Notes under the pieces: model-generated | Databases searched by the model: none | Told to the model about the DNA's origin: nothing | The model's input: the letters and a program-made list of their open reading frames with translations, nothing else | Part shown: positions 531 to 63,128 of the stretch, in pieces | Position numbering within the stretch: position 1 is the stretch's first letter | How the letters are laid out: each line of letters opens with the position of its first letter | Position numbers and translations under genes: made by a program | Source of the DNA: Camelus dromedarius | Taxonomy: Eukaryota | DNA length: 64,000 nt | Assembly: GCF_036321535.1 (NCBI RefSeq) | Contig: NC_087463.1 | Span: 16,306,001-16,370,000, forward strand | Reading direction: 5' to 3'

Positions 531-643
531 GTTTACATATGAAATAGCTCCAGTATTTACTGTCATGGAAACAGTTCTTCTCAAGAAAATGTGTGACATT
601 ATTGGCTGGGGAGAAACAGAAGCAGATGGAATATTTTCACCTG
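531..643 (+). CDS. GAD3: GAD3 exon, 113 nt: (M)[37 protein letters not shown](G)
   Basis: tattatag|G acceptor, CTG|gtaaga donor; size equals the GAD1 counterpart. Confidence 0.96.
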
Positions 644-3600
644 GTAAGAAAGCATTTTCTAAGCTAAAAGAAATATCAGAAGACAATCAAAATATATTTC
701 AATGTGACTATTTTTGAGAGAGAATGCTCGTAAGCCATGGTGTTGGTTATAATTACAAACCGAGTTTTTAGAAATCTACAAGTGGTGAGTTGTGTTGTTT
801 GAGCTTTCTCTCAAGACTTTCAAGGAAGGCTATTTTAACAATCACATCAGTAATTTGACACCACTTTAGTTTCAGAAAACACTCAAATTGTCATGATTTC
901 AGTCAACAGTTCTGAACACCACTTTAGTTTCAGAAAACACTCAAATTGTCATGACTTCAGTCAACAGTTCTGATTTTTGAAATTAGATTAACAGTCACTG
1001 TTTCTCTTCCATAGGTGGGAGTATATCAAACCTCTATGGTATCCTAGTAGCCCGTTATAAGAAATATCCAGAGATAAAAACAAAAGGCATGACTTCACTT
1101 CCATGCATTATATTATTTGTTTCTGAACAAGTAAGTATAGATTTTTCCAACTTTTAAGAATTTTCTCAGATATACTGATAAAGTAATTGAAATCGGAGAA
1201 TATTTGCTTCATTTTTACACTAAATATATTTAGTAATCTCTGTGTCTGGATCTACATATTGATATGGAAAGGGGGAAAAAACCCAACTTTCCGGTCCATA
1301 TAGACTCTACAGATTAGCAATAAAAATAATTCAAGATTAAAATTTTATTTCAATGTAGGAGAAACTAACAGAATAAATATGATTATAAATATAAAACATT
1401 CTGCTATCTTTACCAAGAGAAATCAAACCATAAGTATTTCAAAAATCTAATGATTCTCTTTAACACTGAATGAAGGAATAAGAATGTGATTAATGTTTTA
1501 TTTTTCAAGTTAGGACCAAAGGAGTTGATTGAAAAGAAAGCTTTATTTTTATAGGTCCTCAGCCAAATATTTCTGATATTGACAATATATCCACTAATGT
1601 CTCCTTTAGTTTTAATGTTCCAACCTTGTGCACAGTATAAAAACTTCTTAAAAAAATCAGTTCCTTCCTCTAATAAATCTGATTTTTTTCTTTTCTACTG
1701 TGGTAACATTTATCATCTTGAAGTGTCACTGCAGTCCCAGCTTGAGATTTCTACCTAAAAGTACTTGGAGACACAGGGTTTTCTGTAAAATGTCCCTAGG
1801 TTTGTGATGTCCATCCTTCGCCAAACTCAAACTGGTGTTATATGGGTGCGTATATCAAGCTGGAGACCGCTGCTGCGTGTTATTTACTATATGACGTTAT
1901 TTAGTATAAATAACAGTAATGTTATTTATAACATTATGTCATTATAAATACTTATAATTATTATAATATAGCTATTATAAATAACTAGTAATACTATTTA
2001 CTATAAAACGTAATATAATTGAAGATGTTTGTTTACAAATGTCACTTTCGCCATCATTTGCATATACTTTTTAAATATAATGAGCACAAGAAGCTGAAAT
2101 TCCATAATGTAGATTAAAAAAAATTGTTCCCTATTTAACCTGTGTATTCTCCACTGACATGAAAATGTGGTTGAGGTTTTAAATTTCTGTATTTTTTTCT
2201 CTCATATAGCTGGTATTTTCTTGGCAACTAAAAATAACTCAGGCCAAGTTCATCTTTTGAGCTGCTACAACCTCCATCTTATTGATACTGTTTATATTAC
2301 GTAAATGTTACCAGGAGATACTAGCCACCAAGAAGGCAAGAAATCAGTTGATGTCAGAGTCAGAATTAAAAATTGGAAGCCTAAGAATTGACTCAGTTTT
2401 TCAGGCTTAACTCTGTAAAATACTCTGTAATGCAAGACTGAAAGCTGTCCATAATATGTAAGGGTTTACCTGGAGGTATAGTCACTGCATTTATAAATGA
2501 CATGATTCATGTGTATACAGAGAACTGGAAGGTTCAGACTCCTCCTGCATGGGAAGAGCTGTGTTCTGTGACTGTGTGGTCTAGAAGGAGGTACTACAAC
2601 CTTCTTCATCTCAGCAAATGTTGTGATAAGGGTCTGGAAATATCCCTTGGGAGCTGTACTTACGTGTATGTACATATATCCCTGCACAAACTCATTCAAA
2701 GCTATGCGTAGTGCCAGTGATGCACTAGTGTAAATGGCGCTCTAATGCAGGAAAATTAATGCCTTTCCTGTTTTCACTTCTGCCCAAGGGTCATTATTCA
2801 GTAAAGAAAGCTGCAGCAATCCTTGGTATTGGAACTGATCACGTAATTGAAGTAAAATGTGATGAAAGGTATTTTTCTTAACACATTCTCCAATTGTTTT
2901 ATTAGCATTATGCTTCATGTGAAGATTCAAATCTCCTGTTTCTCTTATTCCAACTTTTATCAAGAATACTCTCCCAGATTAGTTTCAATAATTTTAACTA
3001 GAGGCAATTATGACAGAAGCACCAAAGTTATCCTATCCTATTGTTAAGATTTTTTTTTACTAGATATAGTCTTATACAAGTGAGATTGGTGCATATCTGT
3101 CCCTTGTTTTAGGTATATTGAAATATCGGTGTAATGATATTTGGAGATGAAAAATTCAACTGCATTAGAAATCTACAGAGTGAAAATAAATTTCCATTTG
3201 TCTTGAATCCCGCTTTTCATAAGTAAACTATTTAAAATACATATATTCTGGAAGATCACTTTGATGCATATCAAATTTATTCATACAATTATGCCTATCA
3301 AATTCTATCTTGTAATCTGTAACTTATTCTTTTAATTTTTTTGGCTTTAGAATATATCATAGAAATCTTATTCCATGAATTCATACAGACCCTTCTTATT
3401 CTTTTTGAATTTCTTCAGAGTTATCCGTTTTATAAATGTAACATAATTTCACAAACCTTATTTAAAAGGATTTTCATATTTTAATTTTTATTTTTTAAAT
3501 AATTTTAAATATTTTAATATTTAAGGACAGTACTTAAATGAATATAATTACATAAATATATCTGAGTGTCTGAATATTTCTCACATGAATTCCTAGGGAT

Positions 3601-6600
3601 TGAATCATTTGTTCAAATAATATCTGCATTTACGGTTTCACAAAGATTTTTATTTGCCCTTTGAATATTTTTGAGGCAAATGATGCTCTTATCTACCATG
3701 TGAAACCTGAAAATTGTCAGTAGTTCTATATTTGAAAATTCTAATGACAAAAATGATGTTTAGTTGTTTGGAACAATGAACATCGAATATACTGACCAGC
3801 CAATTGTGTATGATTACCATGATCTGTCTGTTCATGTGCTTTGCCTGTTTTTTATTAGTAATTTATTATTTATTGGCTTGGGAAAAAATCTCTATATATT
3901 GAGAAGTTCTGAACTACAAAATACATGAATATAAAATATCTTGCAAATGTGTTTTATGAGTCTGTTATTCAATACTTTATCTCAGTTGTTTGATTTTCTT
4001 TATATATTTCCTGAGAATTCCTCCCCCACATATTTTACATATTTTTTACTATTATGAATAAGATATTTTCTATTATTTATTCACAACAATTAGTTTAAAA
4101 AATAGAAACCTAGTTTACTTTTGTAATCACCCCGTTGCTCAACAATCTTATTATTTTCAAAAGTTTTTCCATAAACAGTTTTAGGTATTCCAAGGCATGC
4201 ACACACAACCATATGTACTCAAATTAAGGGTTTGTGTTTTTTTTCCTATTTTAATTTCTTTCTATCTAGCTGGCTAGCTATCATCTATCTGTCATCATCA
4301 TCATCATCATCTAGCTAGCTAATAGATTATTACCTTAGAAAATGGTACTATAATACTGGTGGTAGTGAGCATCCTTATCTTATTCCTGACTTTAATAGGC
4401 ATGCTTTCAGTGAGTCATTAATAGATATGCTGACTTTTAGTCCAGTAGCTGGACAGAGTAGGAAAATATTGGCTTTTTTTTTCCTCAGAAATTTGCTGTG
4501 AAGAAATGTGAGGCCAACTGAATTTGTGCCACCATTCCCCCCACCCAAATTTAGATACTTGACTTTTCTACCTTGATGTCAAGAAGTCTTAACTTTATAA
4601 TTTAAAGTTAATAAGGAGAGAGAGAGAAAGAGATTATTATTCTGTATCTTTCTTAGAAAGACCAGATACCTTCTGATTTGTAAGTAATGCAGATTTTAAG
4701 GTGACTGAACAGTAAACTAAGCATTCTTTAACTCAAATAATGTGATATTTAACATTGGTTTTAGGTAACTGAACATTTACTTAAACCTGTGTTTATACCT
4801 ATAAATACCTTTGGGAGACACTAAAAACTAATTTTAAATCTTGAATATTATTTTTCTTCTAATTGGTAGAATTAGTATGTCTGTTCGCTCATAATAAATC
4901 AATATGTATTTGCATTTTTAAGGGGAAAGATGATTCCAGCTGAGTTAGAGAAAAATATATTACAAGCCAAAAGAAAGGTATGTTTTGCAGTTACATATTT
5001 AACATGCAAAAGCATCTTAATTTTTTAAACCTATTTTTATTAGTGGAAAACAATTGATAAGGTAATTACTAAAGGAAATAAAATAATCCTTAAATGTAGG
5101 ACATTTCTTCCAAAATTGAAATATTTAAGTAACATTGCAGTATTTCTCTGATAATTTTGTTTCTGTTAAGTATCCAAAAAAAGCTATCAGGATATTTACT
5201 CATAAAGGAATTTGGTCATCTGCATTGTTGTGGTACAATTTTTGGAAAATAAATTCGGAAAGAAATAATAAATGAGACTCAGAGGCAGTGCTCTTTGTTC
5301 ATCTAATGGTTAAGCTACTTTCTCCTGTACTGGAAAAATCTCCAAATATTTGAAATTATTAAGTGCTTAATACTCTTAGTCAAAGTTGCCCAGCTTCCTG
5401 ATGTCCAGCAGTGTAAGGCTTAGATAACAATATTAGCATCCCTGTGGACTTCATGAAATTGTGAGAATGATACAACTTTTGTCATCACCAGGGCCAGACT
5501 CCTTTCTGTGTCGCTGCCACCGCCGGCAGCACAGTGTTCGGGGCCTTCGACCCCCTCCACGACATCGCAGACATTTGTCAGGTGCACAGACTCTGGATGC
5601 ATGTGGATGTAAGTCACATCCATCAGTCTGGACCATGATTTCCCTTTTTAAAAAGTGTATTCTGGGAACAGTCCTTACAATTTCCTGACTGGCATTTCAG
5701 GCAAGATGAAAATTTCTCTGTAAACCCAATTTTTATAATGAATAGATATCAAGAAAGAATAGTCTTACTTCCCTAAATGATCTTAAAATAGACTTAATAT
5801 ATTATGGAAAGAGCTATAAATATATCAGGTGTTTAAAAAAAAAGTCTAAACCTATATCAATATTCAGCTAGCAATTTAGAAAATCAATTCGAAGAAACAG
5901 TTCAAACCTGATTTTAAATAAAAAAGACTTAGCCCATTACTTTAATATACATTTCTTAATTAATAGCTATTAAGGAAATTAAAAGTTTTGATGTTCTTAG
6001 TTTAGTACAGTGACTTTGGGCAAAAATGTCTTTGGCTTTGATTAAGAGTTGGACAAATTTTAAATTTACATCTTTAGGTAGATATTTTCATTTTTCTATA
6101 GTATTGCCAAATTTGATGCCAACTTTAAAAAAAAAATCTTGTCTCTGGAAATTATACAGCAGGTGTCTCTTTCATTTAATTAGAAACCTAAAACTTTACT
6201 ATGTCATGAATAGACAATGAGAATTCAAAGGAGGAGATTTTAAAATGCATTGTTCTTCTAAGTAGGGTAATTATAGCCAAGTTTATAATTATCCAGCGTA
6301 GCAATTAAATCTTCATCAACTTTTGAAATAAATTTAACGTAGGCAAAAGCAGTCGGTGCTATTTAAAAAGAAAGAATTGATATAAGAACACATATCCTTT
6401 GTGTCTGTTGCAGGCAGCCTGGGGAGGCGGACTGCTGCTGTCCAGAAACCACTCCTATAAACTCAGTGGCATTGAAAGGTGAGACCTGGCCCATTGCTTG
6501 TACCAACAAAAAAACGTATTTAGGCTTCTGTTTTCTGTTGCTAGAGTGTGAGCTCTAATTGGAGCTGTTTTCTCACCTAGGGCTGACTCTGTGACCTGGA

Positions 6601-9600
6601 ACCCACATAAACTCATGGGTGTCCCCCTGCAGTGTTCTGCTGTCCTGGTCCGGGAAAAAGTAAATGATTTCAATCTTTAAGTAGTGATGTGATGGATATC
6701 TTGGTAATGACTAGCTTCCCTGTGAATGTTTAAAACCAAAATAGTTAAGGCCTCATGGGATTAGCATAGTGCAGTGCAATTTGCCCTACTGAGGAAACCT
6801 TCCCCCTTGATCTGTAAGTAGCAGCCACTGCATAATTAAAGTGCCATAAAATCAGATGACTATAGGACAAGTAGTGAGTCAGCGTGTGGGTAAGACATGG
6901 GGTGAGACCATAGACTGCGATGAGGTCTCTAGAAACCCTGGGCATTCACGTCCCACCTTTTTAAAAACACCACGAACAAAACAAAATATCTCTTTGGGGT
7001 CAAATATGGTCCCCTGGCTGATTTGTTATCTCAAGAGTGTAGGGCCAAAACAGGACTCATTTTAAGTGTGGATAACTATGAGTAACTGTGATATATTTTT
7101 AGCAGATAAAGCACAAAGTTATGGGTTGGATAAAATTATTTTCTGCTTATATATTTGTGTATTTTATCTCCATCAACAGTAAATGCAACTCTATACAAGG
7201 AGATAAGCCCATGATCTCTTCCAAGGGGAGATACAGTGATGAAGTTCAGCTTGAGTATTCCCATCTCTGCTGAGTTGTCAGAAGTGCAGATGCACTTTAT
7301 GTAGCTCTCATTTATGGCTTTGTTTTCTTTCTCTCTTATTCACAAGCAATTCAGTGGGTTTGGGTTTAAAGATAAAAGTGTTTGTCTTCCCATTATAAAC
7401 TGCCTGAGCTGGCATTCCTCACTTACTCTTGAGTATTAAATACCTACCTCATCTCCTCTCGTCCTAAAAGAGTCTTTGTTCTCTCCCAGCCTAAGTCATA
7501 CTCAGAGCAAGTCAGGCTGGAACGGTTACCTCTGCTTCAGACTCTGCTCAGTTGACCCCATGGCAACAAGACCCCATCGATAAAATGGCAGCTGCTATGA
7601 GTTGGAAACCCGCAGGTTCACAGGCTCAGTTTTCCTGTCTGTTGGTGTGTGTTCAGTACCTAGAAATTACAGTGTGGCCACATTTTTTTTTTCCCTTTAA
7701 GAAGCTTTTGAGTTTGCTTCCCCTCCCTGTTGCTGACAGATCTATGTTCAACTTTCAGATTCCTGATTCTTTAATGTTTAGGGCTCAAATACAAATTTTT
7801 TGCAATCTCCCCTGATTTCTTCTCCCACAATGAGTGTGTGAAAGTTACCCCGCCCTCACCCCCCGCCTCCGTCTCCTGCAACCCAGATTGTAAATTCCAT
7901 CAAGGCAGAGATTTTCCCACCCTTTTCGGTATCACAAATCCACTGTCCCAGTGCATGACAGGTTGTATGCATTATAAATATCTGTTGTATTAATGACTAA
8001 CTGTTGCTTACCTTCACATCAGAACCAGTAGTTAAAGCTCATATTGACTATACTGTTTTAAAATATTTTAAATAGTCTCCAACTCTTATCTAACAAACAA
8101 TTGAAGTGGGAGTTTCAAGTAAACTAAAGAGAAAATATTTTCATTTGTAAATAGGACACTCAAAATATACATACGTAAAGTCCTCTCCTTTGCAAGGTAT
8201 CATTTCTATTCCATTTCCCCCAAATACTTCAATAGTTACCTCCACATCGTGGTCCTCTCCCTACATCCATAAGCCTCTCCTAAAAAAGAGTATGAGTTTT
8301 CTTCCTTTAGAAACTGAATTTCCACAAACTCTAAGACAAGCTGCCCTCTTGTTAGCTCCCAAATTTATCACTGTAAAGATATACGGTCTTGAAAACTAGT
8401 TACCATGCTCAAGTTTCAGTTTCTTCAATCTATAAAAATGATGTACGAACAGTACCTATGTCATAAGTCTTCCGTGAGGATCAAATGATACAATATTTGT
8501 GAATTGTCCAGCATAGAATAAGCACATTGTTATGTGTTTCTTATTCAAAAAGTTGTATTTGGTATATATTTAAACTATATCCTGTCAGTGCACACAGATT
8601 TAGCCTTTGTTACGCTTAGCAACACACACCTGTTGAGAAAAGACTGTTTTTAACCTGGTAATGGAAAACGTTTCTTTTCTCCAGTGATTTTTTTTTTAAC
8701 CATCCAAAGCGAATATTTCTCGATTCATCAACACTAAGGAGGAATGTTTTCAACATCTTTTATATGAGAGGAAATGGCTAGGAAAGTACCAAATTAAATA
8801 AATGGATTATTTTACTCTCTACCTTTTGTGGCCATCAGAGCAGTTTATTTTACTGGCACCTGTATGGTTGATTCATGAGAGAGTTTACTGGTGAACTAGT
8901 CACTCATTAATAACTTCAATGCATGATAGTCACATAATTTCAGAAGAGCAGCAAAGCTTCAAGGCTTTTAAGAAAAGTTAAAAGAAAAATAGATAGGTAG
9001 TAATTCAGTTACACCATCTACTGTTCCAGAGAAATCCAAAGAACAACTGAAGCCACTAAAATACTAAGGAAGTAACATATTTTTATACAAAACAAACAAA
9101 AATTCTACTTATATGTGCATGTAAAGCAGAAATGTGAAGTGAATTGAAATAGTTGTGGTTTCTTATTGAAATGTGTATGACTTACATAGTAGCTATGTTA
9201 TTCCTTTTCAGGGCCTCCTGGCAGCATGCAACCAGATGCGAGCTAGATACCTTTTCCAGCCTGATAAACTCTACAACGTTGACTTTGACACTGGGGATAA
9301 AGCTATTCAGTGTGGCCGACACGTTGATAGCTTTAAGCTGTGGTTAATGTGGAAGGCAAAGGTAGGGATTTGCCACCTCTTTTATTAGGTCCTATTAATT
9401 TGGATACACAGTATAAACAATTCCATTTTTTAGAACTTCATTTGGGTGTCTTTTCCCAAATTATTTTCTTAAGCATCTCTCGAGGAAACTGCTCTATTTT
9501 TAATTGCAGATGGCAAGCTTGGTTTCTCAGGTCAGAATGCTAACTGAGGTGGAAAATTTGTTGGCCTTTTCTACCATTACTACGTATTCTACCAAATGGC

Positions 9601-12600
9601 AGAAATTAAAATCTGTTAGGAATATTAAATTGTTTGTTGCTTTTTAAAAACTGTGATTTTTTCCTTCTACTAATTGGAATTGGAAATAGGTCAAGCTACT
9701 TGAAGTCAATATAGATTCCGAGATGTGAACATTCTATTGCCTGAATGTTCACTCTACCTTAGAGCCAAGGGCAGCAGATACAGTCTCTCCAAAGATCATG
9801 ACCAGTGTAGGATGTGTTCTGCACCCTCCTTATTTACAATTTTTAACTTAATCAATTGACATGCTTTTAGGAAGCTGTTTCTATTGTGCCTTCCCAGTCC
9901 TTCGTAGGAAGACGGACATTAGGTTCTGTGCAGGTAAAAGCTTTGACATGAACTAACAGCATCTTTAATGCATTGGGGTCCCAGTCCTCTACAGCATATC
10001 TCCCCCTCTGTGGATCCTAAGGGACTCTTCTCAGCTGTCAGTTTCAGGGGTAGTCATACTTCTCCAGAACAATTGGTTAGGTTTTTATTTGGTGGATATG
10101 GAATTGCTAGCATGAAACTCAAATAGACAAACAGGTTCTGTAACATGAATCACAGAGGCAGATTCATGATCCTTCTTTAGTTTGTCTGTAATCTGTTGGC
10201 AACATTTTCTCTTCTAACTTTAACTCTTTTTTATCACCTGCTTTTTCCTAACCTTATACTAACCTTGTTCAAGATAAGCATTAAAATACCACCTCAAATA
10301 CTGTATATACATTAGTAACTCACCTTCAATCCTTTCAATAATAAGGCATTGAAATAATGAATACATCAGTTCAACAATAATGGATCTACCATTTGTTGAA
10401 CATGTATTAGGCTAGAAAGCTTTAAATGTTATTAAGCTTATGTTTCCCAACCTTTGTGCTGAGTGAGTGTCATTAAATAGGTAAAGAAATTAACTTGCTG
10501 ATGGATAAAGAGAATTAAATCTTTGGCTGTGGGTTCTGTCCAGCAGAAGTCCCACCAAGACGGAAGGAATTACTCGAGGATTTGTGGAAAGTCAAGAGAG
10601 CTAGAGGGCTTCAGAGACCAACTCTTTGAGCCTCTCAAACACGCCCATGTTTATTGTGCACAATCAAAGAAAAGAGCATAAACAGTTGTGTCATGGAATG
10701 CAGGAGCTTAAGGAAAAACAGGATCAGGAAGAGATCAGAAATTCCACAGTGGGCACAAAGGCTTAATGTATCCTCAGGGCAGTCATGGGGAGAGGGGAAC
10801 AAGGTACATTCTTCAGACATGAGACATAAGCAGACCACCAGAAAACCAGTTCCTTGTCTTGGGAGTTACAGACTATCTAAACAGCAGAAAGCATGCCCAG
10901 CGTGTATAGCTGAGGGCATGGTCCTCGCTTTGCAACGAGCAGAGTAAACCCTGAACTAGGGACCTGTGCTTCAAACAAGCCATGTCCTATGTTTATAGCA
11001 AGGGACACACTATGGCTATGCCACTGCGGAAGCAGCCCTAGGCTAAAACCTCAACTATGCAAGCAAGGCATTGTCTCTGCTTTTTACAGCAAGGAGACAG
11101 GCGTGCAGATGCACAGACGCCTGCCAGCAAAGCACATTTGTTCTTCCTAAAGGTCACAAGTGGCTGGGGTCTATTAGAATTTATTAACCCAATCATGGGC
11201 TCCCACAGCTGGCATTTCACCTAAATCCAAAATCTATTTTTTTCCCCACAAATCCACATCGTCTTTCTTAATATAAAATTCACGTAGGGTAGTGATGAAG
11301 AAACAAACTCATCATCTTTTGCATATGGAGATGACTTCATAAAAGTGGTGCATAAACAGATGTTATATTAGCAGAGCCATTCCTGTAGGAGTAGGAAATG
11401 AAATCTCAGTGTACCAGGGGAAGGGAATTCTTTTCCCATTAAAGATCATTTCTTATACACTAGAAGTCAGGTTCAGGTAAATATCCACGGTGGACTTGAA
11501 AGGGAGTGGACGTGCAAGTTTGTAGCGTGATTTCCAACTATTAAACATTTAAATATTTGATCTGTGAGCCTCCATCAGTACTCTTGACAAAACGATGGGC
11601 ATTAAGAGCAAAGTCTAGAGATATAAATGAAAAAATTGATATTTTTTCTCACTTGTGATAATTATATAATGAATACGTCATTGATGGTAGAGGTGAAATT
11701 TTTATTGAAATGCAAATTTCTTAAAAATAAAATTAATTACATAAAATACTGTAATAGGTTATAAAGATAAGTAAGATCTACAAACATCAGTTATTCTTCA
11801 AGAGTAACTATAATGTGAAATATTTAGATGGATTTTCTTTTTGGATGGATTTTCTACATGGATTAGACTGGTTTTATATTCATAAAATGACTGTTTTGGC
11901 CGGGAGAATGCTATAGGAAGCTGAATTGTCCAAGAGCCCCATCTGCTCCTCTTAAATTAATAATTGCATTTGCCCTGAGAAACCTTTGCTTCCCAAAGGT
12001 TTCTCCCAGTCCATGACTGATTGAAAATGGCAGGGATTCTAAGGCATTCCCATTCCTGAGGGACAGGAGGCTCTCCTTGATGGCTGAGTTGGTGAAAAGG
12101 GTTCCCAAGGGCCTTTCGGAACCTCACTTAGTCATCTAGGGCGCTTCCACCTCGCCTTTCCCCACCTTCTGCTTTCACTTAAGAGTCAGACTTCTTCACA
12201 ATCTGAAAGCTCTCCCGGTCTAGCTGGCTCCTTCCCTCTGTCTTTCACACAGGTTCTTCCACTATTAAAATCCTTGCACCTTTAACCCCATCTTGGTGTC
12301 TGCCCTTTCGAGGACCTGGGCTAACAGTCCAATTAAGTTCAGAATGGAAGTGCCTTTGTCTTTACTATTCAGTCTTAGTAGATTTTTTTTTTCCAAGAAA
12401 CTTAAAGATATATTTACAATGAGGATACACATCCTGATATTCTTCATTGCCAATTTAATATGCACTGAAGGCCACTGAAAGTTCTGTATGGAAAACTTCT
12501 AGAGAGTAATACATTCTATGTCAAGCATTTCAATGGTCTTTGGTCCTGTTTCTTCAGAATCCAGAGTAGGAATATTCTTCATCAATAATTTCTATTACAT

Positions 12601-15600
12601 TTTCTGCCGTATTTTCTTCTTTTAACTACTTACAGCTTCCTCCCTAACCAGATTGTTCTCAAAGGAAAAATCTGACACAATAGCAAATGATAAAGTGGCT
12701 AGCACAAGAAATTAGCCCATTGATATTTAATCATTTCTATTCTTAAGCATTTCAAAGACTAACAATGCCTTTTCCAAACTAATATTTGTTCAGAAGAGAG
12801 TTGGAGCATTTAGACCATATGTTCATATAATCAAAGCTTCNNNNNNNNNNNNNNNNNNNNNNNNNNNNNNNNNNNNNNNNNNNNNNNNNNNNNNNNNNNN
12901 NNNNNNNNNNNNNNNNNNNNNNNNNNNNNNNNNNNNNNNNNNNNNNNNNNNNNNNNNNNNNNNNNNNNNNNNNNNNNAAGGCTTTGGAAAAGGATAAAAA
13001 AGTGAAAGAATGCCAGGGGTGAGTATTCAAAATTTTAAGTAGTATGTTAATTGTCGATAGGAAGGTTACATTTGAGCAAAAATCTGAAACAAGTGAAGAG
13101 GAGATCATGCTGATATTTAGAAGTGTAGCAAGAGGGAATGTCAGTTGAAAATCTTTGTGGCTGAAGTATGCCTGTTGTGTCGAAGACACAGCAAGGAGAC
13201 CACCGCGGCTAAAGTGGAGTGAGCTGGTTAATTACAGGGAAGTAATGTGAGTAAGATAGGATGTGGGAGAGTTCCTCCATCCTTATCATTCTTAGAACGC
13301 CAGTGCCTTCTGTCTCTGTTGAAAACAAGTTCTGATTTAACTAGAAAGTGTGGCCTCTTGGGGCTCCTAGCATCCCCTCTTACTCAGTTGTAGGTGCAGC
13401 ATCCTCACTTTGGACTATTTGCATTGAGTGTCACTGAGCTCCCACATATCACAGGACCAGTGGAATTCTGTGCTCACTGTGCATTGCAAAGGCTACATGT
13501 GAATGGGAGGCAGGGAGTAGCAGGCATGTATTTCCTGTATCTCCTTAGCTCACAGGCATGATCCATTGTCCCACTGGACTTCACTTACAAAACACAAGAC
13601 CGAAATAAAATTTTAAAGAGTTTCAGGACAGCAAAACTCCTCTGAGGATGGGAAACTCTTCTGAGTATGGGACCCTGTATGACTGCACAAAACTGTATGT
13701 CCATGAAACCAGCTCTGATCACAAAGGCTTCGGTGTGAGGATCCACTGAAGTACCACTTCATGTGGTTGTGAAGGATCTACACCACACAAGCCTGGAATA
13801 AGTATGAATGTGTTAAATAAATACATTTAAATAAAATTTAATACATTCTAGGAACTTCTTCAATGTAATCTAAAGGTACTTCCTTGAATGAAGTTTTTAC
13901 TTTGAATTTTTTTTTTTAATTACAGGGAACCTATGGCTTTGAGGCACAGATCAACAGATATATGGAACTTGCAAAATACTTGTACAAAGTTTTAAAGAAA
14001 AAAGATAACTTTAAGCTTGTGTTTGATGCAGAGGTAAGGATTCTTTTAGTGGGCTTTTTTTTTTGGAGAGTCCTTAATGGATGTATACTTTCTTTGCTGA
14101 GGATTTTGTACTTGAAACTATTACTTGTCTAATACTTTGAGATAATTTAAAATTAAGATATATTACATATAACTATCATACATATTTTATCTTACCTAAA
14201 TGCAAAACATTGAGGCTTTAAAAATGTTTCCATTTAAGTTCTCTGTCATGCAGGCCAAGGGTCCAAAAGACTTAATTTGATGACTATATTCAATTTTTTA
14301 ATTTTAAAGACAAAACTATTCGGTTATAATTGCTTTTCTGATTTTGATGGCATTGAATCAAGAGTAATTTCATTGTTCCTAGCTTTTTTTCTTGTATGTG
14401 AAGTATGCAGTTTGGTTTCTGGATAGTAGATGACGTAAGAGAAAGTGGGCTTTAAATTATATAATAATCCTTAGTTGGTCACTATTAAGGTAATAAGTAG
14501 ATATTAATGAAAAAATTGAGAGTTTTTAGTATTATATCCATTTCCCTCTTCAAGACCTGGTCAGCCATCCAATGGCTTGCATGAAGTCACGCTAGTGAGT
14601 CATTATTAGGAAAGGAAGGTGCTTGTCTCCCTCTGCTTGTATTAACTTTAATTTTTGGTAGTCTCCCTCAGTCAACTAGACGTAAAGAAGTTTGTTTATT
14701 TGTTTGTTTTTAATACTACCCGTTCCCTGATAGTTTGTTTTCCTCTCTGAAATCAGAGCTTTCACAGTTGATTTAAGTAAAGTTCTCTTCTATCCTTTAT
14801 CTCTGTAAAAGAGATCCAGTCACTGAAGCCAGACACCTTGAGTTCATCTTGAAAGCCTAGCAAAGATCAGTTCTATCTTTTGAAGATGTTGGAGATGGAA
14901 ACCCTCCTATTTAACCCACAGCCTTTGCTTTAGCGAAGCTTTCTTCATTCTCTCCTGAATCACTACAACATTTTAGTTACTAATATTCTCCTCTCTCCAA
15001 TGGTGCTCTCCTCTAATCGACTGTCTGTACCACAACCTGAATGACCTTACTCATGGAAAACACTGGCACTATCATCAACATACTTAATATATTTTGAGGA
15101 CTGGGCATGGGATGGGAGGCTGAAGACTGAGCTCTCTGTGAGGACAGCAACTGTTTCTTTTACCTCTGTATTTGGTGCCTGACTTAGACCCTCGAAAGCT
15201 ATTTTTAAATATATTAAAATTAAATTAAATTAATTAAAATACTTCTGGAATAATTAAGGATTTAGGTAGTGCTTTAAAGATACTTATAAAATCACTAAGG
15301 AATTAGGTAATGCTTTAAGAACATGTGTAAAATTTTTCTTTTTGGTTTAGCCTGAGTTCACCAATGTCTGCTTCTGGTACTTCCCACCAAGACTTAAACA
15401 TATCCCAAAAGGTTTTGAAAGAGATCAAGAACTGCACAAGGTAAGTCTGTGTGTGTATGGGGTGGTGTTTTTAATTTTAATATTGCCTTTTAAATAATGT
15501 GTCTGCATTCATTTGGTTGGTGGATGGTGGTCATGTGGTCCTAAGCCATTGGTTTAATACTCATATGGAGCCAAGTGAAATCTCAACCCATCAGTCATTT

Positions 15601-17280
15601 TGCAGATTAATCCAGTCATCATTTATATAATTGAGAACTATTTATTGAGTGCTTAATATTCAGTTATCTGAGTTTCTTACCCTTTGTTCAATTCATTCAT
15701 CAGTTAATATTTGCCAGGTGTTCCATAGGAGTTAGAGGTATGAAATGAATAAGACAGAATCCCAGTCCTAGGTGGGCTGGAAGGCTTAGTGTGGAGAAGT
15801 CAAGAATATAAATAATTACAGTTCCTAAGAGCAATAGAAGAGGTACTTGGAGAAGCGTGATCACATTTGAAATACTTATTACAAGGTCATCTGAGTAAGA
15901 ATCTGAGAGAGATTTTTTTTATGGATCAATGATCAACACTGAAAAAAACTGAATATCATAACAGTGGGGAGATTTAATATTTACCTTAATGATGTATGTT
16001 ATAATAGAGAGGATTGCCACCATTATGTGCTGTTTAGCACATACATTTATTGTAAGCTTTTAACCTATCTTAAGCACACATCATATACTTTATAATAGTA
16101 GTACCACCACTTTTGAGTTGACCAACATCACAACCACTTATGTTAGGAATGCTGAGTACCCTAGGATAAGTTGAACACAAACTCTCTGACGTTCAAGGGC
16201 ATCAACTTTTTATACCATCAGAAAATTTCACTGGACTAGTAAATTCCAAGACAAAACAGAGATTTTGTTTGTTTGTTTAAGGGCAAATACTAATGTCTTT
16301 TATTCTGTGGTCATGTTGATTAATTGAAATGTTAAATAACGAAGGACATTAAATGAAATGTCTACTAAAGGAGACACACACACACACATATATATAGTTG
16401 CTTCTGCACTGCCATTATATAAACACTTACGGGAAAGTTAAGTCATGGATGGCGTGTGTAGCATTTTAAAGTTAAACTATGTGCAGAAGCAGAAGTTCTG
16501 AGAAGAGGAGCGTGTTGAGAATGCCCTCTTCCTACTTTCCTGAGCCTCCGTGACACTTTATTCTATAATAGTAACCCAAGAGCTTAATGTGATCTCATGT
16601 CACATGCATGGTGGTGTTTTAGGAGCTGTACAAGACAGTTAAAGAGGCAGACTTCCTCTCTGTGAAATTTACAAAGAAACTGTGTTTTGCTGCCAAACAG
16701 TAACCTTGTAGGAAAACTCGAGATGTATTGTCATTATTCAGATAGTAGACCAAAACATACTACTGCTTTTCCATTCCCTATCTCATTTTACCTCTTTCCC
16801 AGATACTTTGAATTGCCTGATAAATATGAACAAAATGTCACTCCACCTTCTCTAATGTATTCTTGCACACTTGCATTATTTTGTGAGTTTGGTAGTTGTG
16901 AATCGGGGAGCAACAAGAGCTGCAGTATGAATTTAGAAAGTGCTGCTTTTTTTTTCTGTGCTAAGCTGTTTCTTAAAAATTATTCCTGATGGTTTTAAAT
17001 CGCCTGCAATTTCCTTCAAGCTAATGATAGTTATGTAGTCATCTAGAATGTGGGACAGTGTTTGCTTGTAAAATTTCCTTTTAATGATATTTGCATTTAC
17101 GCACAGATTGCTCCAAAGATTAAAGCACAGATGATAGAGGAAGGTACAGCCTTGATAAGCTACCAGCCATGTGGGGACAGAGTAAATTTTTTTCGAATGG
17201 TCTTTTCTAATCCTGCCACCAGACAAGCAGATGTTGACTATCTTCTTGATGAAATTCAAAGGCTTGGGAAAGACTTATGA
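531..17280 (+). CDS. GAD3: Glutamate decarboxylase 3 (GAD1-like paralog), 5'-partial, 11 coding exons, 381 codons plus stop: join(531-643,1015-1130,2789-2868,4923-4977,5492-5608,6414-6478,6581-6659,9212-9361,13926-14033,15351-15440,17107-17280)
   Basis: Exons total 1147 nt and splice in frame with GT-AG introns. Motifs: [40 protein letters not shown] (PLP lysine), YLFQPDK, IQCGRH, NFFRMV, C-terminal RLGKDL*. Against recalled human GAD67 the 150-nt exon is ~39/50 and the 108-nt exon ~19/36 identical, too low for a mammalian GAD1/GAD2 orthologue. GAD family identity is near certain; the name GAD3 is inferred. Confidence 0.9.
858..973. repeat. 58-bp tandem duplication (2 copies, 1 mismatch)
   Basis: 858-915 and 916-973 read acaccactttagtttcagaaaacactcaaattgtcatga(t/c)ttcagtcaacagttctga. 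Confidence 0.95.
1015..1130 (+). CDS. GAD3: GAD3 exon, 116 nt: [39 protein letters not shown]
   Basis: tttctcttccatag| acceptor, CAA|gtaagt donor. Confidence 0.96.
2789..2868 (+). CDS. GAD3: GAD3 exon, 80 nt: [26 protein letters not shown](R)
   Basis: ttcacttctgcccaag| acceptor, AAG|gtattt donor; contains the PLP-stacking His. Confidence 0.96.
3150..4440 (-). mobile_element. Old L1 (L1M/L1ME-like) fragment
   Basis: T-rich decayed sequence with antisense ORF2-like text such as 'gagcatccttatcttattcctgactttaataggcatgctttcagtg'. Confidence 0.6.
4923..4977 (+). CDS. GAD3: GAD3 exon, 55 nt: [18 protein letters not shown]
   Basis: gcatttttaag| acceptor, AAG|gtatgt donor. Confidence 0.95.
5492..5608 (+). 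CDS. GAD3: GAD3 exon, 117 nt: [39 protein letters not shown]
   Basis: gtcatcaccag| acceptor, GAT|gtaagt donor; ends at the PLP-binding Asp. Confidence 0.96.
6414..6478 (+). CDS. GAD3: GAD3 exon, 65 nt: [21 protein letters not shown](R)
   Basis: tctgttgcag| acceptor, AAG|gtgaga donor. Confidence 0.96.
6581..6659 (+). CDS. GAD3: GAD3 exon, 79 nt: [26 protein letters not shown] (PLP Lys codon 6609-6611)
   Basis: ttttctcacctag| acceptor after a 102-nt intron, AAA|gtaaat donor; NPHK Schiff-base motif. Confidence 0.97.
8395..8530 (+). mobile_element. MIR SINE fragment
   Basis: 'agtttcagtttcttcaatctataaaaatg...gtgaggatcaaatgataca' matches the MIR core. Confidence 0.7.
9212..9361 (+). CDS. GAD3: GAD3 exon, 150 nt: [50 protein letters not shown] (catalytic loop)
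   Basis: ttccttttcag| acceptor, AAG|gtaggg donor. Confidence 0.97.
10530..11207 (-). mobile_element. Solo LTR (probably ERV1 class), antisense in a GAD3 intron
   Basis: TG...CA termini, 4-bp TSD GCTG (10526-10529 / 11208-11211), minus-strand AATAAA (tttatt 10650-10655). Confidence 0.7.
11892..12326 (+). mobile_element. ERVL-type LTR (MER54/MER73/MER74-like), sense in a GAD3 intron
   Basis: Ends 'attaaaatccttgcacctttaaccccatcttggtgtctgccctttcgaggacctgggctaaca', typical of this LTR group. The 5' boundary is approximate. Confidence 0.65.
12841..12977. other. N gap (137 nt); further gaps at 19504-19650, 42929-43065, 49493-49636, 49809-49969
   Basis: Runs of n. Confidence 0.98.
12990..13230 (-). 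mobile_element. L2 fragment
   Basis: 'gaaggttacatttgagcaaaaatctgaaacaagtgaagagg...gcaaggagaccaccgcggctaaagtggagtgag' resembles antisense L2. Confidence 0.55.
13310..13717 (-). mobile_element. MER45-like hAT-Tip100 DNA transposon remnant
   Basis: 'ttcacttacaaaacacaag...gggaccctgtatgactgcaca...catgaaaccagctctg' is the reverse complement of the MER45 left end. Confidence 0.7.
13926..14033 (+). CDS. GAD3: GAD3 exon, 108 nt: [36 protein letters not shown]
   Basis: T-tract...ttacag| acceptor, GAG|gtaagg donor. Confidence 0.96.
15351..15440 (+). CDS. GAD3: GAD3 exon, 90 nt: [30 protein letters not shown]
   Basis: ttctttttggtttag| acceptor, AAG|gtaagt donor. Confidence 0.96.
17107..17280 (+). CDS. 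GAD3: GAD3 last coding exon, 174 nt: [57 protein letters not shown]
   Basis: tttacgcacag| acceptor; TGA at 17278-17280; FFRMV substrate-binding Arg retained. Confidence 0.97.
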
Positions 17281-18049
17281 TATGTCAGTATGAACTTGAA
17301 TACCAAATGTAGACATCAATTTAAAAGCGTCTACTGCTGAAGATAACAAGAAAGGAATATTTGAAGTGATACCCTCTCTTTTGGAACGTTAAGAAGATGA
17401 AAAAGGAATGGGTTCGTGGAAGATAGATGTAGGTAGATAGATTCAACTTTGTTCATGTATTTGTTGTTTTTACTAATTCAACAAAAATTATTGAACATCT
17501 ATTAAATGTCAGGGGCTTTTCTTGGTGTGCTTAGAATACGTCAGTAAATGAGAAAGACAAACATTCCTCCTCTTGTAAAGAAAGAAATTCTACTGTGAAC
17601 ATTCAGTAAGTTAACATATATTTACTTGCTTGAATTAATTGCATGGGCTTCCTGAGTTGAAATCGTTTTCAATATCATACAGCAGCATTCTGTATCTGTA
17701 AAAAAGAAAATAATGCATAGGATGTTTTTCTATTTCAGCTAAATTGGATAAATAGAATTTTCTGCATTTTGGAGCAGAGAGTCAGGAAAGGGAATGACAG
17801 GGGCTGATATATTTGCCTTTTGATACTTGCATTTTTATTTAAAAGGGACTGTGGCTTCCACCAAGCTTCTATGCAGTGATTTAATTCATTTTTTTTCTTG
17901 CAACACCATTTTGAATGTTCCTAAAGATCAAGATTTTTTTAACAATTCTCCAAAAGTATATTAGCCATATTTCACAAAATGGTATTAGGTAGCTCCGTAT
18001 TGATGGTGAAATTAGCGTTTTTCAGCTCCTTTTTCTGAGATAATAGAGT

Positions 18050-18255
18050 TAACGTTAATTGAGCACTTACTGTGTATCAGATGGTATGCTAAGGATCTTA
18101 ACTTACATGGTCTCATTTATTTCTCTATTAATATTACACTTAAAGTGCTTTATTATCTCCGTTTTGTGAATGAGTGACTAAGATTTAAAGAGTTTAACTA
18201 ATGTGTCTAACAGCATGCTGCTGATGAGTAATAAACCCCAAATTCAAAGCTAGCC
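18050..18255 (-). mobile_element. MIR SINE
   Basis: 'ttgagcacttactgtgtatcagatggtatgctaagg...ctccgttttgtgaatgagtgactaagatttaaagagtttaactaa'. Confidence 0.7.
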
Positions 18256-18464
18256 AGGCTTTTTCTCAAGTGTGTATGACAGAGAGCCTGCCAGACACCT
18301 TGCTCCAATTCACTCACACTACCTACCAGTAGAGCCATTTGTCAAATCGCTTGATATATGCACGTCTCTTTCCTTTCCTCTGAAATAGGAATGATAATGG
18401 TGCCTGTACCACAGCGATGCTGTTTGAATAACATCAAATGATTATATCAAATATTTTTTAAAAA

Positions 18465-18597
18465 TTGAATCATTCTCTATGTGTTAGCTTTTTCTTCCAT
18501 GATGTATGCATAAATCAAATCATCACAATATACACTTTAAATATCTTACAGTTGTAATTGTTAATTATACCTCAATAAAGCTGAAAAAATAAAAAAG
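18465..18597 (+). mobile_element. L1 extreme 3' end with AATAAA and A-tail
   Basis: 'aaatcatcacaatatacactttaaatatcttacagttgtaattgttaattatacctcaataaagctgaaaaaataaaaaa'. Confidence 0.8.
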
Positions 18598-19121: not shown

Positions 19122-19650
19122 TTTCTTTTTTAATTGAGGGCTAGTTGCTTTACAATGTTGTATTAGTTTGTGGTATGCAACAGAGTGATTCAGTTATACA
19201 TACATATTCTTTTTCATGTTCTTTTTTATTATATGTTATTATAAGACATTGAATATAGTTCCCAGTGCTGTATAGTAGGACCTCATTGTTTATCTATTTT
19301 ATATGTAGTAGTTTGTATCTACTAATCCAAAACTCCTAATTTATGCCTCCCTTTTCCTCTTTGGTAACCATAACTTTATTTTCTGTGTCTTTGAGTCTCT
19401 TTCTGTTTTGTAAATAAGTTCATTTGTATCATTTTTTAGATTCCACATATAAGTGATATCATATGATATTTGTATTTCTGTGTCTGACTTACTTCACATA
19501 ATCNNNNNNNNNNNNNNNNNNNNNNNNNNNNNNNNNNNNNNNNNNNNNNNNNNNNNNNNNNNNNNNNNNNNNNNNNNNNNNNNNNNNNNNNNNNNNNNNN
19601 NNNNNNNNNNNNNNNNNNNNNNNNNNNNNNNNNNNNNNNNNNNNNNNNNN
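19122..19650 (-). mobile_element. Cetartiodactyl-type L1 3' UTR, running into an N gap
   Basis: 'ttttaattgagggctagttgctttacaatgttgtattag...ttagattccacatataagtgatatcatatgatatttg'. Confidence 0.85.
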
Positions 19651-25332: not shown

Positions 25333-25470
25333 GTTTTTTTAATTTAAATTATTTTTTACTAAGGGGGGGATTAGGTTTATTTGTTTATTTTTAGAGGAGG
25401 TACTGGGGATTGAACCCAAGACCCTGTGCATGCTAAGCACATGCTCTACCATGTGAGCTATATCCTCCCC
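25333..25470 (-). mobile_element. Camelid tRNA-Ala-derived SINE (Vic-1-like)
   Basis: Reverse complement of the 27131 element; TSD tct(a/g)tgcctttgt at 25320-25332 and 25471-25483. Confidence 0.85.
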
Positions 25471-27130: not shown

Positions 27131-27249
27131 GGGGGGAGGGTATAGCTCAAGTGGTAGAGTGCATGCTTAGCATGCTTGAGGTCCTGGGTTCAATCCCCGG
27201 TACCTCCTCTAAAAATAAAATAAAACCTAATTACCTCCCCCTGCCAAGT
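27131..27249 (+). mobile_element. Camelid tRNA-Ala-derived SINE (Vic-1-like) with intact Pol III A and B boxes
   Basis: ggggggagggTATAGCTCAAGTGGtagagtgcatgcttagcatgc...GGGTTCAATCCcc...aaaaataaaataaaacctaattacctcccc; 16-bp TSD with 14/16 match (27115-27130 / 27250-27265). Confidence 0.9.
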
Positions 27250-29589: not shown

Positions 29590-30210
29590 GGAGGCAATTA
29601 TGGTGATATCATCACTGTAAGGCACTAACTGGCTTTTAATGTTTATCATTTCCAAGTCCTTCTCCACCTAATTATGACGAACGCCAGTGAATTCAAATAT
29701 CCCCATGGGAAAACAGTAAATGTATACTCGATTCCATCCAAAAGCACGCAGGCTGAGCCTGGCTCAGTTGAAAAGAAGGCCCTCGCTAGTCTGGGAGGGC
29801 AAACAGATTTCTGCCGAGCTCTCTGACCTCTTTCTTGTTCAGTCTTTTCCACGTTCGACCCAGCCGAAGCCACCAGAGACACCCTGTGCTCCTGACCTCC
29901 AGGGTGTCTGCTTTGCACACTGACCGGTCAAGACTGTTAAGAGGGGATTTAGTAAGAAACAGTACTCCTGCTTCAGCCACTGTCTTAACAAGGGTGGTGA
30001 TCTCTTGCCGCCCTCCGGGCAGTTCTAAAAGTTGTCCTTTCGTGTGGCCAGTTGGAACTGGGCAAAGGGCGGACTTGGACAGCAGCCCACGTGAAAAGGG
30101 CCCGGCCAACAGGACCAAGCACGCATTGTATCCATCCCATTCATGCGCGTGGGAAGAGCCCAACCCATAGCTCTCCACCCTCCCAACACAGAAGCTCCTC
30201 ACTCTCCCTC
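29590..30210 (-). mobile_element. Fossil ERVL pol (reverse transcriptase) fragment
   Basis: Minus-strand peptides LELPGGRQEITTLVKTVAEAGVLFLTKSPLNS, DGIEYTFTVFPWGYLNS and YSDDI (29605-29619) match recalled ERVL RT motifs (IPGG.AEISATIKDLKDAGVV.PTTSPFNS; QYTFTVLPQGYINS; YIDDI) in order, across frameshifts. Confidence 0.8.
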
Positions 30211-30569
30211 CCCTTTCTCATTGGGCCTCTCACAACAGCATCGCTGTCCTGTCCGCAGTCTCACTGTGCCTCAAGCACTCACGCCTGCTGGGAAAACTAA
30301 GCATTTGCAAAAAACGGCTCCTTGGCTGCTCCACTCCTATTGTTTCGTAAGATCCCCGTCAGGGGGTGGATGACTGGATGAGCAGGGCATCGGCTTTTAA
30401 TTGTTTTCAGATTTGACCACTTTGACTAAGACAGTGGACTCATTTCTGGTTCAAATATTTTTCATTCCAAACTGAGGTCCTTGCAGATGAATCTGAATTC
30501 CTCAAGGCCTCAGAGGCATAAGGAGAATAGATTATATCGTCTTCATTGAGAGTTGTGTTTGGAAAGGAC

Positions 30570-31200: not shown

Positions 31201-31599
31201 GCCTGAGCGTGGACACCTGATTGTCTTTATTTCCAGGAAGGCGTTTTTCTGTTCGTGTTTGTTTGTAATAGCCAGATAAGTATATTTTCATAAACGGGCC
31301 AGCAGGTGTCAGTAAAAGGCAAAGCAGTGACATGTGAGTTTTGTATTGGGCTGTCAGATATTTAATTATCAGAGTCAGAGCTTAGCAAATAAATCCGTCT
31401 TTTAAATGTAATAACTCTACGCATAATCCTCTTTTTTTTGGTGGCGGGGGTGGACAGGTGGTAGCAAGAAGAGGCATTGGTTTGATTTTCCAAGGGAGCA
31501 GTAGGACCGCCAGACACTCAGCTGTTCTGGCCAATCATAAGGCCTTGAGAAATCCCACTCAGAAGGTTTTCACAAAGAAATCTCACACCTCCCAGGGGC

Positions 31600-62981: not shown

Positions 62982-63059
62982 GGGGGAGGGTACAGTTCAA
63001 GTGGTAGAGTGCATGCTTATCATGTATGAGGTCCTGTGTTTGATCCCCAGTACTTGCTC

Positions 63060-63128
<69 letters not shown>

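Follow-up and report, generated by a model that had tools for sequence, protein, structure and literature searches.

Gene structure at the locus

The window, a stretch of 64,000 nucleotides of Camelus dromedarius DNA, carries at 531-17280 on the + strand the last 11 coding exons of the dromedary orthologue of GAD3, most likely a working gene and predicted from its sequence to encode a glutamate decarboxylase that makes GABA. GAD3 is the third vertebrate GAD of Grone and Maruska 2016 (Sci Rep 6:30507; PMC4962313), and also goes by the names 'glutamate decarboxylase 1-like', gad1.2 in Xenopus, and zgc:163121 in zebrafish. That work described the family together with its phylogeny, exon structure, synteny with MC4R and CDH20, and loss from hominids as well as from mouse, rat and squirrel, and it pointed out that GADL1 lacks GAD activity despite its name. 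GAD3 is thus already published for mammals, among them horse, rabbit, dog and platypus, and the sequence-only reading was correct about the paper as to the third GAD, the MC4R/CDH20 synteny and the hominid loss.

Exon 1 (531-643, 113 nt) opens with the third and last base of a Met codon split between exons and encodes FTYEIAPVF...GIFSP(G), the first residue of which is the equivalent of GAD67 F214. Exon 2 (1015-1130, 116 nt), which encodes 38 residues, is followed by exon 3 (2789-2868, 80 nt) with the counterpart of the PLP-stacking histidine H291, by exon 4 (4923-4977, 55 nt), and by exon 5 (5492-5608, 117 nt), where the equivalents of T348 and D373 are found. The AAWGGG motif is in exon 6 (6414-6478, 65 nt) and the N-P-H-K motif in exon 7 (6581-6659, 79 nt), the latter corresponding to N402, H404 and the Schiff-base lysine K405. 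Exon 8 (9212-9361, 150 nt) encodes the 11 residues of the catalytic loop, including the Y434 equivalent, as well as that of C455, and its top match among solved structures is GAD67 (2okj; E = 5.8e-23). Beyond intron 8 (9362-13925, 4564 nt) lie exon 9 (13926-14033, 108 nt), exon 10 (15351-15440, 90 nt) and the last coding exon, exon 11 (17107-17280), with 171 nt of coding sequence, the R567 equivalent, the terminus ...EIQRLGKDL* and a TGA at 17278-17280.

All acceptors of the 11 exons have AG and all donors GT, the donors being mostly GTAAG, GTATG or GTGAG and the acceptor tracts rich in pyrimidines. The exons total 1147 nt and, after the split-codon base, give 381 codons plus the TGA with no internal stop or frameshift, which bears out the canonical splice sites and uninterrupted frame that the sequence-only reading had reported. 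This is the 3' part of the gene, 381 of about 504-516 codons; the promoter and the initial 123-135 codons fall outside the window, and what is said of them below comes from database gene models. Past the stop, positions 17281-18492 can be aligned at 68-78% with the region 3' of the GAD3 stop in sheep, armadillo and elephant, and are a probable 3' UTR or flank with candidate polyadenylation signals at 17501 (ATTAAA) and 18230 (AATAAA).

An assembly gap, a run of Ns at 12841-12977, lies wholly within intron 8. Its 1-kb flanks match the alpaca GAD3 locus colinearly, 60 bases apart and at 96-98% identity (coordinates only were compared), and therefore no coding sequence is affected. Exons 8 and 9 also join without a missing residue in all ungapped orthologue alignments, and an exon hidden in the gap is ruled out on both grounds.

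Camelid orthologues and existing annotation

Searches of structures and databases were made with single exons, and later with the dromedary database protein that is identical over the 381 residues; among representative sequences the last exon matched mainly short fragments and a few useful long ones. Two Camelus dromedarius RefSeq proteins, XP_064336369.1 and XP_010978310.1, match the 381 residues at 100% identity. Their names, "glutamate decarboxylase 1" and "glutamate decarboxylase 1-like", are as had been expected of a camelid gene annotated only as GAD1-like. There are two mismatches with the Bactrian/wild camel protein and six with alpaca. The identification is correct, but the gene is already known and annotated, the family having been described in 2016 and the camel gene being in RefSeq.

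At the DNA level the window is 96-97% identical to, and colinear with, the alpaca GAD3 locus, and it is also colinear, introns and 10 kb of 3' flanking sequence included, with the GAD1-like loci of sheep, dingo, rhinoceros, armadillo and elephant. In the alpaca sequence compared, four more coding segments precede the part that matches the window, at 10001-10033, 11776-11898, 12323-12568 and 15104-15193. Positional orthology is shown only by this colinearity with GAD1-like loci; MC4R and CDH20 would lie outside the window. No ORF of MC4R size occurs in the window, and 17.3-64 kb shows no recognisable coding segment; no meaningful ORF of at least 110 aa turned up, none of the stop-free segments of at least 75 aa downstream of GAD3 resembles a conserved exon, and no neighbouring gene was seen within 10 kb of the orthologous GAD3 loci examined. 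The GAD1-like gene of pig has been reported from chromosome 1, within a QTL interval that takes in MC4R. An Rfam scan of the window returned two tRNA-like matches only. A tRNA-Ala-derived SINE family restricted to camelids is present in the window, in agreement with a camelid origin of the DNA.

Placement among the glutamate decarboxylases

The exon sizes (113/116/80/55/117/65/79/150/108/90/174) and phases are the same in GAD1 of sperm whale and hedgehog, so that the sizes are indeed exactly of GAD1 type, and they are also the same in alpaca GAD2 and in GAD3 of sheep, dingo, rhinoceros, armadillo, elephant and alpaca. Over the 381 residues, ungapped identity is 92% to the pig 'GAD1-like' protein and 90-91% to those of sheep, dog and rhinoceros, compared with 66% to GAD1, 64% to GAD2 and 53-56% to CSAD. 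Bit scores of the full dromedary protein are 837 for GAD67, 757 for GAD65, 553 for CSAD and 532 for GADL1. Pfam PF00282, the group II PLP-dependent decarboxylase family, is precomputed for all GAD3 orthologues, and NCBIfam, a prokaryote-oriented library, gave only sub-threshold matches to the full dromedary protein.

In a maximum-likelihood tree of GAD1, GAD2, GAD3 and CSAD, with GADL1 compared only by its solved-structure score, the window protein falls inside the GAD3 clade (25 rows, support 97/94) and groups there with pig, sheep and narwhal. Support is 98/96 for GAD1 and 100/100 for GAD2, and the CSAD outgroup is split off at 100/100. Placement within GAD1 is rejected by the AU test (p = 3.3e-6, log-likelihood difference 247), as is placement within GAD2 (p = 2.1e-5). 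The identification as GAD3 made from the sequence is therefore upheld by tree and AU tests alike, with no clustering of the protein with GAD1, GAD2 or CSAD. Because the GAD3 clade also takes in members from shark, gar, coelacanth and Xenopus, the duplication is ancient.

Compared with published GAD3 there is nothing essential that differs. The window protein shares its clade with gar gad3, a coelacanth protein and a Xenopus laevis protein of 542 aa (presumably gad1.2), its exon junctions are the same, the full camel models have the shortened N-terminus, and the locus is colinear with six mammalian GAD1-like loci; the paper, however, lists no camelid. GAD67 (2okj) has the same exon sizes, all of the PLP-binding and catalytic residues, and the loop proline (Pro438) of mammalian GAD67 in common with camel GAD3, yet it is a separate ancient paralogue. 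GAD65 (2okk) likewise shares exon structure and catalytic residues, but is also a separate paralogue and differs at loop positions 433, 438 and 441. CSAD and GADL1 (2jis, 6zek, 6enz) belong to the same group II PLP-decarboxylase fold family and have the conserved Lys, His, Asp, Tyr and Arg, but differ in their specificity residue.

Selective constraint

The maximum-likelihood omega for placental GAD3 is 0.192, and pairwise dN/dS values range from 0.11 to 0.19. Along the lineage leading to the window sequence, 16 non-synonymous and 28 synonymous changes give a dN/dS of 0.15 (binomial p = 1e-9 against neutrality), and the replacements are conservative exchanges (I/V, E/D, E/Q, N/D, K/R). Between camel and alpaca there are six non-synonymous and seven synonymous changes (omega 0.23, p = 0.01). 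A dN/dS near 1 would have spoken against a functional gene, and the values of 0.15-0.23 for these two comparisons are far from it. The only baseline was GAD1, at an omega of 0.027. Non-synonymous change in GAD3 is thus about 5-7 times as fast, and its omega about 7 times as high, so that GAD3 is constrained, though less tightly than GAD1 (~0.19 versus ~0.03).

Intact exons, canonical splicing and purifying selection together indicate that the exons in the window most likely belong to a working protein-coding gene. A pseudogene, whether processed or unprocessed, is ruled out by the presence of introns, the intact frame and an omega well below 1. The GAD3 models of three Camelus species and alpaca in RefSeq are free of the LOW QUALITY flag, which is carried by the models of narwhal, minke whale and clouded leopard. 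Several mammals have lost GAD3 or retain it only in degraded form, so it is dispensable in some lineages.

Active site and predicted reaction

The nine catalytic and PLP-binding residues that had been listed for the protein are all present when it is aligned to the 594-aa GAD1 (H291, T348, D373, N402, H404, K405, Y434, C455 and R567). Among 201 columns that are invariant across 20 GAD1 and GAD2 sequences, 171 are kept in the window protein, and most of the 30 replacements are conservative. Fixed differences that set the GAD3 clade apart from GAD1/2 number just three (G244A, I494L and I580V), each of them conservative. Three further changes are seen in Camelus: G433R, private to the genus and adjoining the catalytic Tyr, where alpaca keeps Gly; M406L, immediately after the PLP lysine; and S290G, immediately before H291. 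A Leu after the PLP lysine is also the CSAD residue.

The substrate pocket is of GAD type as judged from its residues, with Ser192 in place of Phe or Tyr, the catalytic-loop Tyr434, and Arg567. F214 is within the window, whereas the specificity Ser is encoded just upstream of it and was seen in the dromedary RefSeq proteins; S192 and N212 are present in camel RefSeq proteins and in 23/24 GAD3 rows. The role of Ser183/192, as opposed to Phe94 of CSAD, has been described (bioRxiv 10.1101/2020.09.25.308866), and in the same work CSAD was not turned into a GAD by exchanging this one Phe for Ser, so that the residue at this position cannot by itself prove the substrate.

The product would be a dimeric, PLP-dependent group II alpha-decarboxylase. 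PLP should be bound in it as an internal aldimine to the K405 equivalent, with the H291 equivalent stacked on its ring and D373 pairing with its pyridine nitrogen. R567 is expected to bind the leaving alpha-carboxylate, and protonation of the quinonoid intermediate would fall to Y434, which the other subunit contributes on its mobile catalytic loop. Because the pocket has Ser where CSAD has Phe and GADL1 has Tyr, the most likely reaction is predicted to be L-glutamate -> GABA + CO2.

Alternative readings of the locus

Taken at face value, the RefSeq names would make this either GAD1 or a copy of it that arose recently within the lineage, and both "glutamate decarboxylase 1" and "1-like", along with a top solved-structure match to GAD67, could be cited for such a reading. 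It has almost no chance of being right and is already refuted by the tree and the AU test, and the shark, gar, coelacanth and Xenopus members of the GAD3 clade speak against it too. Moreover, an identity of only 66% to mammalian GAD1 is to be set against the ~10.5 non-synonymous changes (dN 0.012) that separate sperm-whale and hedgehog GAD1 over these same 381 codons. A different concern is that the gene is intact in sequence yet unused or beginning to be lost in camels, its apparent constraint having been inherited from older branches. The repeated loss of GAD3 in mammals (reported for hominids, mouse, rat and squirrel) and the flagged cetacean and felid models lend this some colour, the camel-alpaca comparison has 13 substitutions only, and the literature searched yielded no expression data for mammalian GAD3. 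However, none of the 11 exons has a stop, frameshift or splice-site defect, alpaca is equally intact with its four upstream coding segments included, the within-camelid omega departs from neutrality, the replacements on the window lineage are conservative, and the camelid RefSeq models are unflagged, so that a silent or decaying gene seems a poor prospect.

An improbable reading, if a less remote one, is that GAD3 is a working enzyme whose main substrate is aspartate, cysteine sulfinate, cysteate or another acidic amino acid, in which case the product would be beta-alanine, hypotaurine or another amine instead of GABA. Grone and Maruska raised the possibility themselves (PMC4962313), and GADL1 provides a precedent for a GAD name without the activity. 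The faster evolution of GAD3 than of GAD1 and the M406L change next to the PLP lysine, where CSAD has Leu, point the same way, and a search of the literature gave no enzyme assay of any GAD3. Against this, the specificity position has the Ser of GAD65/67 and not Phe or Tyr, N212 and F214, which are Ser and Tyr in CSAD, likewise agree with GAD, the catalytic loop is closely like that of GAD67, only the three conservative differences are fixed between the clade and GAD1/2, and the whole protein is far nearer to GAD67 than to CSAD or GADL1. A glutamate decarboxylase thus remains the preferred reading.

The N-terminus and wider implications

The dromedary RefSeq proteins have 123 or 135 residues ahead of the first residue encoded in the window, as against 213 in the 594-aa GAD1, so that the camel database models are ~80-90 residues shorter in the N-terminal region. 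In gar Gad3 the shortfall is reported to be the N-terminal targeting region of GAD65/67, and if the part missing from the camel protein is the same, GAD3 would probably be a soluble cytosolic enzyme. The shorter N-terminus is unlikely to include the palmitoylation and targeting region of GAD65. More speculatively, and with low probability, GAD3 of camelids, and of mammals more widely, might be a cytosolic decarboxylase that is constitutively active, has a loop like that of GAD67 and lacks the N-terminal targeting region, perhaps with a non-synaptic job such as making peripheral or metabolic GABA, or with a shifted preference among acidic amino acids. Were this the case, a whole branch of GABA biology would have gone unseen in the standard models through the loss of the gene in hominids, mouse, rat and squirrel.

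GAD3 is of interest as an ancient and constrained paralogue for GABA synthesis that is absent from humans and mice, and neither the enzymology of mammalian GAD3 nor a map of its expression turned up in the searched literature. The window adds no new handle on either; what is new here are the omega values, the count of invariant positions kept (171/201) and the three clade-fixed differences. These support GAD3 as a probable true glutamate decarboxylase, and one that is worth assaying as such. A minor point concerns nomenclature: the plain name "glutamate decarboxylase 1" of XP_064336369.1 can mislead orthology pipelines.

Gene structure and integrity

Unmistakable GAD peptides, e.g. [29 protein letters not shown] and [10 protein letters not shown], occur in stop-free segments of the + strand between 499 and 17280 of the window, a piece of vertebrate genomic DNA with 36% G+C and five N runs. 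Exon boundaries set by hand on the sequence give eleven + strand exons, at 531-643, 1015-1130, 2789-2868, 4923-4977, 5492-5608, 6414-6478, 6581-6659, 9212-9361, 13926-14033, 15351-15440 and 17107-17280, the last being the terminal coding exon. All 11 acceptors are AG, each preceded by a pyrimidine-rich tract, and all donors are GT, in most cases as GTAAG, GTATG or GTGAG. The 1147 nt of coding sequence, the first base of which is the last of a split codon, comprise 381 codons followed by TGA, with neither stop nor frameshift in the window exons. The sequence-only reading of this DNA had proposed eleven exons at 531-17280, a 381-codon frame and canonical splice sites, and the re-derived gene model matches it exactly, with AG/GT at every junction. 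Its description of the exon sizes as exactly those of GAD1 also holds. The homologous coding sequences (1146 nt) were pulled by exact peptide matching from nine loci: six of GAD3 (sheep, dingo, rhinoceros, armadillo, elephant and alpaca), two of GAD1 (sperm whale and hedgehog) and one of GAD2 (alpaca). The eleven sizes (113, 116, 80, 55, 117, 65, 79, 150, 108, 90 and 174) are identical in all nine, again with AG/GT at all junctions. This agrees with the published finding that GAD1, GAD2 and GAD3 have the junctions of exons 3-16 in common (Grone and Maruska 2016, PMC4962313).

One N run, at 12841-12977, falls within intron 8 (9362-13925) and could in principle conceal an exon. Exons 8 and 9, however, abut with no residue missing relative to GAD67 or to every orthologue (ungapped alignments of 381 residues), their sizes of 150 nt and 108 nt recur in every other GAD gene examined, and the 1-kb flanks of the run, compared by coordinates only, match the alpaca GAD3 locus colinearly with 96-98% identity, separated there by 60 bases. 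No exon can therefore hide in the run, which leaves the GAD3 coding sequence untouched and the frame independent of the gap. The other N runs, at 19504-19650, 42929-43065, 49493-49636 and 49809-49969, are non-coding and lie 3' of GAD3; in the alpaca locus, 125 bases separate the flanks of the first.

The first 123-135 codons of GAD3 lie upstream of the window. In alpaca, these codons are spread over four coding segments, of which the last lies 2.8 kb 5' of the counterpart of window exon 1, and the camelid RefSeq GAD3 models carry no LOW QUALITY flag, so the upstream part of the dromedary gene is probably intact as well.

Paralogue identity and annotation

The last exon, used as query, retrieved a narwhal protein, which in turn retrieved many "glutamate decarboxylase 1-like" proteins from tetrapods and fishes. 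The window protein aligns without gaps over 381 residues to the pig protein (92.4% identity) and to those of sheep, dingo and rhinoceros (90-91%). Its identity is 66% with mammalian GAD1, 64% with alpaca GAD2 and 53-56% with CSAD. In a maximum-likelihood tree of 53 proteins (381 shared columns, LG+C20+F+G4) that included GAD1, GAD2, GAD3 and CSAD, with CSAD and CSAD-like proteins as outgroup, the GAD2 clade was supported at 100/100, the GAD1 clade at 98/96, and a third clade, spanning chimaera, shark, gar, sturgeon, coelacanth, Xenopus, reptiles, platypus, marsupials and placentals, at 97/94. The window protein lies in the placental part of this GAD3 clade, grouped with pig, sheep and narwhal (93/94), and clusters inside none of GAD1, GAD2 or CSAD. 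Placing it with GAD1 lowers the log-likelihood by 247 units (AU p = 3.3e-6) and with GAD2 by 166 (AU p = 2.1e-5), and both placements are rejected, which bears out its earlier identification as GAD3. The tree resolved no branching order among GAD1, GAD2 and GAD3. The gar and Xenopus members of the GAD3 clade, both named 'glutamate decarboxylase 1' in the database, are presumably the gad3 reference and the gad1.2 of Grone and Maruska, respectively.

Camelid proteins taken from cluster look-ups show that the gene is camelid, from the dromedary or a species that cannot be told from it over this sequence. All 381 residues are the same in two Camelus dromedarius proteins, XP_064336369.1 ("glutamate decarboxylase 1", 504 aa) and XP_010978310.1 ("glutamate decarboxylase 1-like", 516 aa), with two mismatches to the C. 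ferus/C. bactrianus protein and six to that of alpaca. Window positions 1-27281 are colinear with the alpaca locus at 96-97% identity, and the window is also colinear, across introns and 10 kb of 3' flank, with GAD1-like loci from sheep, dingo, rhinoceros, armadillo and elephant. The expectation that this camelid gene would be annotated only as GAD1-like is thus borne out by its RefSeq names.

The name 'glutamate decarboxylase 1', given in RefSeq to camel XP_064336369.1 and XP_006182867.2 / XP_010959729.1, is that of true GAD1, and several UniProt entries for GAD3 of pig, cattle and rabbit likewise use the GAD1 name. Such a collision of names can corrupt orthologue tables.

Catalytic residues and predicted activity

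In the numbering of a 594-aa GAD1, the equivalents of H291, T348, D373, N402, H404, K405, Y434, C455 and R567 are nearly invariant throughout the GAD3 clade, and alignment finds all nine in the window protein, as first read from the sequence. The protein also keeps 171 of 201 columns invariant across 20 GAD1 and GAD2 sequences, and only three differences, all conservative (G244A, I494L and I580V), are fixed in the GAD3 clade. The catalytic loop has the sequence [11 protein letters not shown], as against AGYLFQPDKQY in GAD67. Directly before the loop's Tyr434 is an Arg433 (9245-9247; codon 220 of 381) that is private to Camelus; elsewhere the position is Gly in alpaca, most placental GAD3 and GAD67, and Ser or Cys in GAD65. 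Because it varies within GAD3 (G, E, D or R), the Camelus change from Gly to Arg is probably tolerated.

In CSAD, His191 stacks PLP, Lys305 forms the aldimine, Tyr335 serves in protonation and Arg466 binds the leaving carboxylate, and the pocket position of Ser183/192 in GAD65/67 carries Phe94 in CSAD and a Tyr in GADL1, although specificity is not set by one pocket residue alone (bioRxiv 10.1101/2020.09.25.308866). The codon for the pocket Ser lies in the exon immediately 5' of the window, where the camel RefSeq proteins read NQLSSGLDV; the Ser is present in 23 of 24 GAD3 rows, and N212 and F214 of GAD3 are also GAD-type. The full dromedary protein scores highest against GAD67 (837 bits), followed by GAD65 (757), CSAD (553) and GADL1 (532). 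Judged from the kept catalytic residues, the GAD-type pocket and these scores, camel GAD3 would decarboxylate L-glutamate to GABA. A non-synaptic role, or a shifted substrate, seems improbable; nothing special in the window sequence speaks for either, and the matter rests on experiments.

Selection and distribution

Nei-Gojobori dN/dS between pairs of placental GAD3 genes is 0.11-0.19, and a single-ratio codon model (GY+F3X4) fitted to seven sequences gives an omega of 0.192. Relative to five other placentals, the window lineage has 16 non-synonymous and 28 synonymous private changes (904 and 239 sites; pN/pS = 0.15, binomial p 1e-9 against neutrality), and its replacements are conservative (I/V, E/D, Q/K, N/H, E/Q and K/R). 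Against alpaca, with six non-synonymous and seven synonymous differences, omega is 0.23 (p = 0.01). None of these GAD3 values, from 0.11 to 0.23, is near 1, the value named beforehand as counting against a functional GAD3, and purifying selection is clear. GAD1, however, has a dN/dS of 0.027 between sperm whale and hedgehog, so GAD3 is constrained about seven times more weakly.

GAD3 was described in fishes, amphibians, reptiles and birds, and in mammals such as horse, rabbit, platypus, macaque and orangutan, with a shared exon structure and a truncated N-terminus, and the gene was reported lost from hominids, mouse, rat and squirrel (Grone and Maruska 2016, PMC4962313). The sequence-only reading had cited this third vertebrate GAD and its hominid loss correctly; its observation is confirmed in every detail and its interpretation supported. 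The window gene is nonetheless an ordinary, already known member of the published family, annotated in RefSeq. Later work on GAD3 is nearly absent from the literature searched, with passing mentions in reviews and one zebrafish transcriptome preprint.

GAD3 models of narwhal, minke whale, clouded leopard and king vulture are flagged LOW QUALITY or lack exons, and the narwhal branch in the 53-protein tree is long (0.19), which together hint at further independent decay beyond the published hominid and rodent losses.

Flanking sequence and repeats

The synteny MC4R-GAD3-CDH20 has been reported (Grone and Maruska 2016, PMC4962313), and a pig GAD1-like gene is a candidate on chromosome 1 in a QTL interval that includes MC4R (pig GWAS paper). 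Neither an MC4R-sized ORF nor a recognisable coding segment was found between 17.3 and 64 kb of the window. A G+C-rich, CpG-island-like stretch at about 29650-31700, 12-14 kb 3' of GAD3, has 60% G+C and a CpG observed/expected ratio of 0.62 (30751-31250 passes the CpG criteria), with long stop-free frames on both strands that hold no recognisable protein; it could be the promoter of an unannotated transcript. Comparable patches rich in G+C are found at about 37.0-38.1 kb and 53.1-55.6 kb.

The window also holds three copies of a tRNA-Ala(AGC)-like element of ~100 nt with an A-rich tail, at 25394-25468 (- strand), 27136-27209 (+ strand) and about 62970-63077. They score 44-46 bits as tRNA in Rfam. 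In alpaca the repeat has three copies at the GAD3 locus and six at the GAD2 locus, and it is absent from seven non-camelid loci (those of sheep, dingo, rhinoceros, armadillo, elephant, sperm whale and hedgehog). It is therefore a camelid-specific, tRNA-derived SINE and not a tRNA gene, in keeping with the camelid origin first assigned to this DNA. It resembles the published vic-1 SINE.
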